Shown here: piece after piece, positions 50,448 through 59,263 of the stretch
Layout: each line of letters starts with the position of its first letter
Numbering within the stretch: position 1 is the stretch's first letter
Source of the DNA: Octopus sinensis
Lineage: Eukaryota
Direction: 5' to 3'
Assembly: GCF_006345805.1 (NCBI RefSeq)
Contig: NC_043007.1
Coordinates: 67,828,001-67,892,000, forward strand
Length of the DNA: 64,000 bases
Made by a program: the position numbers and the translations under genes
Notes under the pieces: model-generated
Databases searched by the model: none
What the model was told of the DNA's origin: nothing
Seen by the model: only the letters and a program-made list of their open reading frames with translations

Positions 50448-50591
50448 TTATTGAAAGTAGTTTCGACGGTAGAGACGGTTAGACACGACATCAACACTGC
50501 AATCATTGTTGTGGAGGAGTAGCAGGAAATCATGTGAGGATGTGGATGCATGTGGACAAACACCGTTGGCGCATTGCATCATTTTCTTACC
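50448..50591 (-). CDS. Last coding exon of a secreted six-cysteine peptide (eclosion-hormone-like Cys framework)
   Basis: Acceptor CTATTCTACTTTCAG| (AG at 50593-92); phase 0; GKKMMQCANGVCPHASTSSHDFLLLLHNNDCSVDVVSNRLYRRNYFQ* (48 codons); supplies Cys4-6. Confidence 0.8.
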   Translation of the reverse strand, partial: GKKMMQCANGVCPHASTSSHDFLLLLHNNDCSVDVVSNRLYRRNYFQ

Positions 50592-50645
50592 CTGAAAGTA
50601 GAATAGTATACATAAGAATATTTAAAACATAATAATCCTTCTGTA

Positions 50646-50862
50646 CGAAGGGATGCTGAAAAATTCCTGGCTTTGGGTAAAAGAAAATACAGTAGGATCA
50701 GTTAATTGTGATTTTATTGCATCTATTCCCCTCTTGGATCCACGTACTTATTGCAGCGGTTCTTCAGTTTTTCTAAGTCCTGTAAAAGAACTCGGAAGGT
50801 TGGGCTTTCAGCCAGGCCTTTTGCGGCTCCATTAAAGCGGGGACCTTTTCACCATTCCCTCG
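50646..50862. mobile_element. ~215-bp mariner-type MITE; second copy at 60659-60864
   Basis: TA|CGA(A/G)GG(GA/G)TGCTGAAAA..TGGCTT and a degenerate inverted end ..TTTTCA..CCCTCG|TA; the two copies share their interior. Confidence 0.7.
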
Positions 50863-50869
50863 TAATAGG

Positions 50870-51292
50870 AATAAATTTCGGAAGAGGGAGCTAATCGATT
50901 ACATCGACCTCAAAACTCAAACTGGTACTTATTTTATCGACTCCGAAAGTATGAAAGGCAAAGTCAACCTTGGCGGAATTTGAACTCATAACGTAAGGCA
51001 AAATGAAATGTCGCGAAGGATTTAGTCCGGCGTGCTACAGAATCTGCCACCTCATCGCCGTTACACATGTAACTAAAATTATTTCTACTATAGGTACACG
51101 GCCTGAAACTTTATGGGAGGGGGCTAGTTGATTACACCGGCCCCGGTACATAACTCGTACTTTATTTTATGGATCCCGAAAGAATGAAAGACTATGTCAC
51201 TTTAGCGGAATTTGAACACAGAACGTAAAGACAAACGAAATTCCAGTAAGCATTTTGTCCGGCGTGCTAACGATTTTGCCAATTCGCTGCTT
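50870..51292 (-). mobile_element. Two tandem SINE family A copies (a further diverged copy lies at 51885-52085)
   Basis: Family head and central motif on the minus strand. Confidence 0.75.
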
Positions 51293-51302
51293 TAAATATG
51301 TA

Positions 51303-51868
51303 TTGGGTTGTCCGGAAAGTACGTGTCGATTTATAGTAGCTTACCTTTCGACTTATTTTAGAACATGGTTGAGTCCATAAAATAGGATTTGACTACACCT
51401 CCATTTAGAGCACAGTTTAAGCTATCATTTCGTGGAAGAAGGTTTATGTTCCCATAACCTGTGTTAATTCTGTAACCCTTTAAAATGGAAAATAAGAAAG
51501 TTCATTTTCAGCACTTGGTGCATTGGGAACTAGACAAAAATTGCTGCAGCTCGGCTGGGATGTGTTACCCCACCCTCCACTTTCTCCAGATATTGCTCCT
51601 TCAGATTTCCACTTATTCAGGTCTCTGCAGAATAGTCTTAATGGTAAAAATTTCAATTCCTTGGTTGACGTAAAACGATACATTGATGAATTCTTTGTCA
51701 TGAAACCACCTCAATTCTGAAAAGAGGGTATTTTCAAGTTAAAGGAAAGATGGAGACGCATTGTGCAAGAAACTGGTTCATATTTGGTTGACTAAAAATG
51801 TAATGCCAAATATTTATTGACCTTTTTCTTTCCTGTAATAATCGGCAAGAACTTTCCGGACAACCCAA
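51303..51868 (+). mobile_element. Internally deleted mariner (non-autonomous), copy 2
   Basis: TA|TTGGGTTGTCCGGAAAGT..ACTTTCCGGACAACCCAA|TA; GTRQKLLQLGWDVLPHPPLSPDIAPSDFHLFRSLQNSL; same deletion as 43843-44406. Confidence 0.9.
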
Positions 51869-56095: not shown

Positions 56096-56159
56096 TCCGC
56101 GATACCTCTTATACTGATAGAATCCAACATACGTAAAAATATGTATGCATACTCACACA

Positions 56160-56312
56160 CACACACACACATATAGACAGTCCAAACATGAACAAGCAAG
56201 AAAAACCACAACACGAGGACGTGGAATAAGTACAGTGTTATTGGACGCCCAGGAAAGAAAAGAAAGAGGATTTCACGTTTCGAGCGGAGCTCTTCATCAG
56301 AAATATAGAATA
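56160..56312 (-). ncRNA. Penelope-type repeat with hammerhead motif (core 56294-56300); GUG triplet, probably inactive
   Basis: ATTT-CTGATGA-A-GAGC(TCC)GCTC-GAAAC-GTG-AAAT; homologous to 14113-14302. Confidence 0.65.
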
Positions 56313-57189
56313 TATATATATATTATATATATTATATATATATATATATATATAGCACTAGAGCTATCCACATAGTGGTAACTCTCTAATATTTATATAT
56401 ATATATATATATAATTATATATATATATATATATATAATATATATATATATATAATATATATATACAATATATATATCAACATACATATATATATATGTA
56501 TGTGTGTATGTGTGTGTATGTGTGTGTGTGAGTATGTGTATATTTAAATGTATATCTATCTATCCACACGCACACACACACGCACGCGCACACACACACA
56601 CACACACACACACACACACACACACACACACACACACGAATGAATTCTACACACTTTCCACTCACTAAATTCACTTAGAAGGCATTAATTAGTCCGGTTG
56701 GTGCTATATCAGAAGGCACTGGCCCAAAGTGCTACGCAATGAAACTGAACCCGTAATTTCGTGGTTTCGATGCGAACTTCTTAACCACACAGCTATATCT
56801 GCGACTAATATCTAATGATATATTTCCATCTTAATATCCAAATTACACTCGTTTTAAAATCACTGTAATATTTTCTCTTTATATTCAGCTTCCATATCTC
56901 TATTCTATATTAATTAATTTCTTATGCAATTATTTTTTTCTCAATCATCCTAATGTTAATCTCGATACTTGTTTAATTGTCCAGTATGGAATATATTGAT
57001 TTTTGTCTCAAGTACACAGCCTAAAATCTTTAGAGGAGAGAGAGAAAGACATATCTATCTATCTATCTATCTTATCTATCTATCTATCTATCTCTATCTA
57101 TCTATCTACTATCTATCTATCTATTACTATATATTATATATATTATATATATATATATATATATATATATATAATATAGTATATATATA

Positions 57190-57390
57190 CATATAGTCGC
57201 CATGATAGATCGTTAGCCACTATACACATTTTTTTCTCTCTTTGTTTTTTCTGTGTCTCTTTCTGTAGAAGAGCGTAGGCTCGAAACGTAAAAGACTTTT
57301 TCTATTCCTGAGCGTTATACTAATATATCTGTTTGTTTTGTACACTACTTGTCTTCGTCTTTTGTTTTTTTCGTAAACTCTCCCTACATA
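57190..57390 (+). ncRNA. Penelope-type repeat with hammerhead motif (57255-57296), core variant CTGTAGA
   Basis: TCTTT-CTGTAGA-A-GAGC(GTAG)GCTC-GAAAC-GTA|AAAGA; flanked by (TA)n. Confidence 0.6.
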
Positions 57391-58182
57391 TTATATATAT
57401 ATATATATATATATATATATATACAGAGAGAGAGAGAGAGAGAGAGAGAGAGAGAGAGAGAAAAAAGAGAAAAGATAGATAGAGAGGAGAGAGGTATAAT
57501 CGGTTTATATCAGATGCTGTTACTTCAATGACAGGGTCTTCCTACAATCGGTATCCCTGTTAGAAGTTGTAGCCGAATGTCTCTCAGACTCCATCAGTCC
57601 TCTTAGAAAAGGAAGGGTACATAAGATAATGTAGTCTTAAATACACTGTCTACACATTCTAAAAATTAGATAGAATAGTCATGGTTGGAACGCTTCTGAT
57701 CATTGAATTGCTTGATTAGGACCAACCTTGCGCTACATAACAACAACTGGTATTTGCAATTTCGATGACATTTGAACTCACAGTTAATTTTAGATATAAA
57801 TGTAACAGTTATAATTTTACTTTTTTCAAATTTCATGGTTTTTACACAAAATACTGAGGTGACTACTAATTTCCAAATTAAACCTATCTATTAAATAAAA
57901 TAAAATTTAAACAAATTCTTGATTTGTATTTTTGCTCCAAATATAGGTTATTGATAACAATGATACTGTTTAACAGTTAATTACATATGTAACATTGTTC
58001 GATATTACTAACAGTAGCGAAAGTATATACCCAACATTAACTTTGACAATTAACTCTCCAGTTTACATATAATAACCAAGGGAGATAAATCCTAAAACTT
58101 AAAAGATAATTTTTTTTGTGGGGACGGACAAACAGATGGAAACATACTGTCAATTATATTAATAGATATTGAAATTTCTTAC

Positions 58183-58323
58183 ATCATCCTTGTAACATTC
58201 ACTGCAGTAATAAAGACAAGCATCTACAGGGCTGATGTCACTGGAAGCTGGTCTAATCGCTTCCGCCGTCGACATCATGCAAGCTTCTAATGCCAGCAGT
58301 ACTGTGAGAATTGTTAGACTCAT
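58183..58323 (-). CDS. First coding exon of the secreted six-cysteine peptide (signal peptide plus C-x3-C-x2-C)
   Basis: Acceptor TTTACTATTTTCAG (58351-50), 26-nt UTR, MSLTILTVLLALEACMMSTAEAIRPASSDISPVDACLYYCSECYKDD, donor |GTAAGA at 58182; phase 0 matches the 50591 exon. Confidence 0.82.
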
Positions 58324-59263
58324 TCTGGATTTGGATATATATTCACTGTCTGAAAATAGTAAATAAGAAAATTACAGAAACATCGACAACAATAACAACA
58401 TCAAACATTGCAGATAAACTTTTATTTTTTATACAGGAATTTTTGAGACAAGTAAGGGTTCATGACCTTTGCATGTAAGCGATTGCTGTTCAAGGAAACC
58501 GTAAAAACACGTTTTATGTTTACACTGCGTCGTTATAAAGTTCCTTTCCCAACCACGATATATCTGGATCGATCCCATTGCGTACCATAATGCCATTTAT
58601 TTTTTTTCGACCCATATCTTGTGAGGGAAATAGGGTAGACGGTTGGATTGTACCAGTAATTCTAATGGTACAGCCTTGTCACGTACTCGAGATTTACGTT
58701 AATGGCACAGATATCCATGGCATGTTCAGCCACTTAAATGTTAATTCATGAAAATGTTTGGCCGATTGAATATTTTGATATTTTGATTGACTATTTCACT
58801 CTGCATCGTCGTACGACAGAGATCCACATTAACCCTCTGCCTGTTCTGTATATCACATGTGATGCATAGGAGATAATTCCCTGATATCCATGCATCATAT
58901 ATGCATATGATACAGATTGCCAATTTTTTCAAGCACCAGAGTAATTTAGGACTTATGAAGAGAAAGCTTTATAATTACCCAGAACGTGTGAAACATGGGT
59001 TAACTAAAAGGACAAACTTATGAAAATGCTGTGGACAGGCAAATGGTTAAAATTCTTTAGAATACACGGTAGAATCCGTTTATGAAGAGAAAAAGATAAG
59101 GAAAATTATTTACACATTGCAGCAGGCTCTTTATTGAGATTGACCATTTCCAACAATTTACTATCATTATGTACACAAAGCATGATGTGATTTTGAAGAC
59201 ATAGAAATACCATTTGCAATTGCTCTTTGCCTATACCCTGAATCAGAATAACTATGCTGACTC

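Follow-up and report, generated by a model that had tools for sequence, protein, structure and literature searches.

The window examined here is a stretch of 64,000 nt from Octopus sinensis (positions 67,828,001 to 67,892,000 of the forward strand of contig NC_043007.1, assembly GCF_006345805.1). It poses the question of whether two short open frames on its minus strand, separated by several kilobases of repeats, are the exons of a gene for a secreted six-cysteine peptide and, if so, whether that peptide belongs with eclosion hormone (EH). An earlier note on this DNA had proposed such a gene, whose product was suggested to be either an EH-like neuropeptide or a member of a distinct family of small secreted cysteine-rich proteins. 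Our analyses indicated that the gene is real and old. On balance, we lean toward the interpretation that its product belongs to an as yet undescribed molluscan family of ancient origin, whose members would be small, secreted, helical proteins locked by disulfides and acting as ligands, and are possibly remote relatives of EH.

Reading and translating the minus strand reproduced both exons with their AG and GT signals (exons A and B, Table 1). Their joining in phase 0 (…CYKDD/GKKMM…; here and below a slash marks the splice point) gave a 94-aa precursor identical to the sequence predicted earlier. The intron, which had been described as 7.6 kb and filled with repeats, is a GT..AG intron of 7,591 nt and phase 0 that contains many microsatellites of the TA, ATAC, AC, TTG and ATT types. 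A candidate poly(A) signal is present 173 nt past the stop codon in a block that is conserved in Octopus bimaculoides; the hexamer in this block is ATTAAA in the window and AATAAA in O. bimaculoides. No second copy of the gene was found in the window by tblastn with the family set and the EH sets described below.

Among 5.8 billion proteins, a word-indexed search matched only one, a 94-aa protein of O. bimaculoides that is 94% identical to the window peptide over its full length. This orthologue (UniProt A0A0L8HG85; XP_014772543.1 / XP_052827744.1; LOC106870833) is named only "uncharacterized protein". The description of the gene as hidden is thus accurate with respect to the list of open reading frames (ORFs) of the window, from which it is absent, but not with respect to public records, as the O. 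bimaculoides gene model is already annotated, although it is unnamed and uncharacterised. The window and the O. bimaculoides locus (L001) are syntenic, with alignable non-coding DNA ~87-91% identical, and the O. bimaculoides exons (28067-28207 and 37319-37462) have the same GTAAGA donor and TTTCAG acceptor. The two proteins have the same six cysteines and differ by six amino-acid changes, including RR to RQ near the C-terminus, and the intron is 9.1 kb in O. bimaculoides versus 7.6 kb in the window.

Comparison of the two coding sequences (CDS) identified differences at 18 of 285 nt, 11 of them synonymous and 7 non-synonymous (dN=0.032, dS=0.21, dN/dS=0.15), and the non-synonymous share was far under the neutral expectation (binomial p=2.7e-4). 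In addition, the CDS was free of indels, and the four 400-nt flanks were 89% identical and gap-rich. Together, these data indicated that the two exons form a real, expressed-type, minus-strand protein-coding gene that is orthologous to LOC106870833.

Relatives were sought with phmmer, using the mature O. bimaculoides peptide as the query against 1.84 billion representatives. Three proteins were obtained at E<=0.001: the query itself, a 93-aa protein of Argonauta hians (GAB1601385; 49% identity, E=4.8e-17) and a 97-aa protein of Sinanodonta woodiana (KAL3873418; E=6.9e-5 as a single sequence), with which a protein of Potamilus streckersoni clusters. With a profile, Sinanodonta/Potamilus reached E=2e-37, and two further members were added, Mercenaria mercenaria XP_045187611 (E=1.8e-15) and the 96-aa product of a 1,159-nt Logan contig (L005) from run ERR1712179 (E=5.7e-11). 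The CDS of this contig shows no interruption at the point of the intron, and a long 3' region lies beyond it; the contig is probably the mRNA of a planktonic mollusc, and the run is one that we take to be a marine metatranscriptome. A scan of JGI metagenome contigs with the family patterns found no relative.

The family set therefore consisted of seven sequences (the window, O. bimaculoides, Argonauta, Sinanodonta, Potamilus, Mercenaria and the Logan contig), all of them unnamed proteins. The first four cysteine spacings (3, 2, 10 and 4) are fixed in all seven and the last is 17-18, and the window peptide and its relatives share the core motif P-x-[DH]-A-C-L-[FY]-x-C-x-x-C-[YF]-x(9)-C-A-N-x-x-C-x(17-18)-C. 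The invariant columns of the seven-sequence alignment were P32, A35, C36, L37, C40, C43, M52, C54, A55, N56, C59 and C78. With a hidden Markov model (HMM) of the family, members scored 100-113 bits and EH sequences did not exceed 12 bits.

The gene structure was also found to be conserved. A phase-0 intron four residues after Cys3 is present at the same site and phase in the window and in all four other genomes examined, with the splice points KDD/GKK in both the window and O. bimaculoides, ADQ/RTK in Argonauta, DDF/GSQ in Sinanodonta and DDM/GPE in Mercenaria. As octopod and bivalve members share the frame and the position and phase of the intron, the comparison indicates that the family is older than the cephalopod-bivalve split. 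In octopods and bivalves alike, purifying selection has maintained the family to which the protein belongs. The expectation that a genuine gene would keep its cysteine pattern and intron position in other cephalopods and molluscs was therefore borne out in Argonauta and the bivalves. The second of the two earlier suggestions, a distinct small secreted cysteine-rich family, likewise gained substance, with a signature and an intron of its own in both groups. A venom toxin was also considered as a candidate, and this reading was dropped because bivalves carry the family too.

The relationship of the family to EH was evaluated against the EH ligand set of De Oliveira et al. (PMC6660194, source data 3), which comprises 334 sequences and includes two O. 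bimaculoides proteins, the canonical six-cysteine EH Ocbimv22037767 and the eight-cysteine EH-cluster peptide Ocbimv22024629. A peptide of the window type is absent from the 334 sequences. When the joined peptide, the individual exons and four homologues were scanned with Pfam, there was no match to PF04736 (Eclosion) or PF01160 at E<=10 and only noise far under the cut-offs (zf-A20, RickCE_cat and Ta0938); canonical octopus EH (Ocbimv22037767 = A0AA36B8R3, P0008) does match PF04736. The N-terminal cysteine-rich domain of vertebrate opioid precursors, which the earlier note had brought in as a further comparison, has a frame of the C-x3-C-x2-C…C-x3-C…C type; it was compared by Pfam only, and the absence of a PF01160 match spoke against that connection.

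The EH profiles were based on 27 EH domains and 20 eight-cysteine peptides from the PMC6660194 supplement. Spacings in the 27 EH domains were 3,2,12-13,3,10-14, versus 3,2,10,4,17-18 in the seven family members, so the x4 and x18 spacings already remarked upon as unlike those of EH represent a difference that is conserved in 7/7 members. The EH HMM scored the eight-cysteine type at 22-39 bits and the family at 3.3-10.1 bits, and Cys-preserving residue shuffles of the family scored ~3±3 bits. Depending on the member, between 7/500 and 230/500 of these shuffles reached the real score (p 0.014-0.46).

Profile-profile comparison of the core alignments with hhalign gave a probability of 43% over 21 columns for the family versus EH, a score reached by 5/400 Cys-anchored column shuffles, and a probability of 2% for the family versus the eight-cysteine type. 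The same comparison of EH with the eight-cysteine type gave 96%. With full-length alignments the probability for the family versus EH was 74.5% (E=2.7e-5), all six cysteines being aligned with gaps of 2, 1 and 7, and the score of 31.4, compared to 22.3±3.6 for shuffles, was reached by 4/300 Cys-anchored shuffles. A weak similarity thus extends past the cysteine frame (p ~0.01), mostly in the CL..C..C[YK]…G stretch. We consider this profile signal suggestive, in that it keeps a remote kinship with EH open, but not enough to claim one. Because the HMM scores, the cysteine spacing and the gene structure all differ, our analyses indicate that the family falls outside the EH family in its current definition, and because a canonical octopus EH exists elsewhere, the window gene would not be an EH orthologue. 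Of the EH-like label, what survives is a weak profile-profile similarity (probability 43-75%, matched by ~1% of Cys-anchored shuffles); the missing PF04736 match and the differing spacing count against it.

An AlphaFold2 (AF2) model based on the seven-sequence alignment had core predicted local distance difference test (pLDDT) values of 77-87 and predicted helices at residues 32-43, 48-57 and 69-74. Cys1-3 are on the first of these helices, Cys4 is on the second with Cys5 just after it, and Cys6 is past the third. The model of octopus EH, which is shallow (from a two-sequence alignment) and weaker than that of the family, had a helix at 31-50 with Cys1-3, a helix at 53-62 with Cys4-5 and a loop to Cys6. 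The order of elements appears similar in the two models, helix order alone having been compared. When the PDB was searched by sequence, both the single peptide and the family profile returned chance matches only (complement factor H and antibody framework regions, E>0.1).

Analysis of the predicted precursor supported the earlier description of a secreted product with six mature cysteines, but not all of its details. In the N-terminal hydrophobic core, Kyte-Doolittle means over 9-mers are 2.0-2.7, and small residues occupy positions -3/-1 (A-E-A) ahead of IRP, consistent with the A-x-A cleavage site that had been proposed. The mature part after AEA would comprise 72 aa with a calculated mass of 8.17 kDa and an isoelectric point (pI) of 6.3, close to neutral, and its six cysteines are spaced 3,2,10,4,18, as had been reported. 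The dibasic RR near the C-terminus, which had been listed as a feature, did not withstand comparison: it is RQ in O. bimaculoides and RL in Argonauta and is absent in bivalves, and therefore would not be a processing site. The internal KK is likewise not conserved in the seven-sequence alignment, and both pairs were rejected as processing sites. Since this alignment contains no conserved basic pair, processing site or amidation site, the protein is probably released intact, without being cleaved into smaller peptides.

Based on these features, we propose that the precursor is directed to the endoplasmic reticulum by its hydrophobic N-terminus and would be cut after Ala22. The 72-aa product (~8 kDa) would then fold as a short helical hairpin, with Cys1-3 on helix 1 and Cys4 on helix 2, in which three disulfides lock the fold, and would be released intact with no amidation signal. 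The most likely role of such a product would be to act outside the cell as a signalling ligand, in the manner of large disulfide-rich peptide hormones. Hormones of this type are few and hard to find by homology.

The 5' end of the gene probably extends past the window. In O. bimaculoides there is a RefSeq isoform of 105 aa in which MEDSEYISKSR is added from an upstream exon (ATGGAGG/gtaagc) located ~18 kb upstream of the next exon. An in-frame open stretch of 26 nt precedes the window ATG and encodes DSEYISKSR as in O. bimaculoides, and therefore the same upstream splice is likely in O. sinensis. Exon A would thus be an internal exon, because it carries its own acceptor. Based on the distance of ~18 kb in O. 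bimaculoides, and on the alignment of the window to that locus ending well short of the 5' exon position, the true start codon and first exon are probably beyond the window's end. If the start codon of the upstream exon is used, the precursor would be 105 aa, and this longer form would supply a positively charged n-region (…SKSR). In the O. bimaculoides 5' exon (L001 9990-10010) an out-of-frame ATG is located 4 nt ahead of the annotated ATG (…TTCATGCATGGAGG/gt) and, spliced onward, would give a very short upstream ORF. The Mercenaria gene also has an upstream 5' exon (L006 1001-1099), and its RefSeq model (129 aa) has 33 residues before a second Met that opens a normal signal peptide (MNSIVVSICACVL…). 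Either the start of the Mercenaria model is mis-called, or a 5' coding exon is a shared family trait, as in O. bimaculoides.

Table 1. Coordinates of the six-cysteine peptide gene and of repeats in the 64,000-nt window
Feature	Position	Strand	Remarks
Exon A	58183..58349	-	acceptor AG 58351-58350; donor GT 58182-58181 (GTAAGA)
5' part of exon A, before ATG	58324..58349	-	after acceptor AG; open in frame (…DSEYISKSR-M)
ATG of exon A	58321..58323	-	
Predicted signal peptide M1-A22 (MSLTILTVLLALEACMMSTAEA)	58258..58323	-	hydrophobic core; predicted cleavage site
Exon A coding part, M1-D47	58183..58323	-	signal peptide + Cys1-Cys3 (ACLYYCSEC); donor GTAAGA at 58182
Phase-0 GT..AG intron	50592..58182	-	microsatellite-rich; position and phase kept in four other genomes
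Exon B	50448..50591	-	acceptor AG 50593-50592 (TTTCAG)
Exon B coding part, G48-Q94	50451..50591	-	Cys4-Cys6 + MMxCAN motif; from translation
Stop codon TAA	50448..50450	-	from sequence
Candidate poly(A) signal ATTAAA	50270..50275	-	
Probable 3' UTR (untranslated region)	50255..50447	-	candidate poly(A) signal; putative 3' end
Non-LTR (long terminal repeat) retrotransposon ORF	8470..11552	-	
Non-LTR retrotransposon ORF	16815..19668	+	
Non-LTR retrotransposon ORF	4646..5386	+	
Long TA/ATAC/CA-type microsatellites	50037..50210, 52352..52989, 56303..56640, 57045..57195, 59715..60190		
Further microsatellite tracts (examples)	32720..33650, 35645..36600, 44809..45090		

The remainder of the features in Table 1 are repeats. 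Among the long retrotransposon ORFs, two have RVT_1 reverse-transcriptase domains (E ~1e-27 to 4e-28) and two have zf-RVT domains, and copies of the same elements are found in a different order at L001 of O. bimaculoides. Microsatellites occur at many sites throughout the window, cross-match the O. bimaculoides tracts L001 26225-26636 and 37780-37985, and are the source of most long but spurious "ORFs" with a high Y, I, C and V content.

Several explanations other than the one we favor were weighed. The two exons are short and were missed in the ORF list, and no transcript data were seen here, as might be expected if they were two chance open frames with splice-like signals; a chance pair is, however, effectively excluded by an intron position common to five genomes, the depletion of non-synonymous changes in an indel-free CDS, and the independent UniProt and RefSeq models in O. 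bimaculoides. The product could instead be a secreted effector that is not a hormone, such as an antimicrobial/immune peptide or a reproductive/pheromone-type protein. It is small and secreted, has six cysteines and lacks processing or amidation sites, nothing links the gene to neurons, and secreted cysteine-rich peptides of oysters can be antimicrobial or trophic (PMC8398477). The window peptide is not cationic, though, and its gene is a single copy there, without a tandem family. Immune and reproductive peptides usually evolve quickly, but this gene has a low dN/dS, and conservation of the core motif from cephalopods to bivalves is strong. Because of the low dN/dS, the near-neutral pI and the single copy, we regard an effector role as rather unlikely.

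We hold it doubtful, but deserving of somewhat more weight than an effector role, that the family is a true member of the EH superfamily, that is, an ancient divergent EH paralogue activating, as EH does, a membrane receptor guanylyl cyclase. The family and EH have in common the C-x3-C-x2-C start, the "CL..C..C[YK]…G" stretch, the "CA" at Cys4 and a similar predicted helix layout; the full-length hhalign result, with its six aligned cysteines, and the rarity of shuffles that match either hhalign score point the same way, and two types of EH-cluster peptide already exist in lophotrochozoans. However, PF04736 was matched by none of the five members scanned (0/5), the EH HMM scores are well under those of the eight-cysteine type and for two members no better than shuffles, and the core hhalign match is short and does not extend to the eight-cysteine type. 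The loop lengths differ in a conserved manner, the intron is not common to the octopus EH gene, and the peptide is missing from the published EH set. Only tentatively, then, would we picture a third, hitherto unrecognised branch of the EH superfamily that arose before the cephalopod-bivalve split and, in animals that do not moult, signals via an orphan receptor guanylyl cyclase.

An undescribed molluscan family with a ligand role remains the reading that we favor, and the following observations weigh against it. The family is known from seven sequences in three lineages only; phmmer and profile searches found no squid, cuttlefish or gastropod members, and exact-sequence look-ups of the window peptide and homologue P0001 in transcript assemblies returned no record. 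The 94-aa form is without a positively charged n-region, and the real start may be the upstream ATG. The termini of the AF2 family model are of low confidence and a Foldseek search of the PDB with this model gave no match, nor did one with the octopus EH model. In addition, the ligand role is deduced from size, the signal peptide, the disulfide frame and a faint resemblance to EH. As for the family being undescribed, its accessions and motifs are not mentioned in the full texts or in the portions of neuropeptide-survey supplements that were covered, an absence that is not proof.

These findings add a conserved single-copy six-cysteine protein of octopods and bivalves to the candidate ligands of the molluscan signalling repertoire, and indicate that short two-exon peptide genes are recoverable from raw octopus sequence. 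If the link to EH is true, the gene would be a new handle on EH-type signalling in animals that do not moult. If it is false, an orphan family remains whose clear signature (DACLxxCxxC…MMxCAN), together with the diagnostic intron position, should ease annotation in other molluscs.

Among known systems, the opioid precursors (PF01160) differ in that they carry their domain at the N-terminus of a long polyprotein, whereas the window product stands alone. The eight-cysteine lophotrochozoan EH-cluster peptides resemble the family in being molluscan and secreted and in their CL.GC..C start, but have a CC pair, a spacing of 3,2,13,0,2,14 and an hhalign score against the family that does not surpass shuffles, and their kinship with canonical EH is clear. 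Canonical EH itself is comparable to the window family in having a signal peptide and one mature peptide of ~60-75 aa with six cysteines, a C-x3-C-x2-C start on the predicted first helix, "CL.xC..CY", and "C[AG]" at Cys4. In addition to the loop spacings, it differs in an invariant Gly after Cys5 that is missing from the window family, and in gene structure, as the octopus EH mature peptide is on one exon (residues 3-96 of the protein) whereas the window gene is split between Cys3 and Cys4. The octopus keeps both a canonical EH gene and a gene of the window type.

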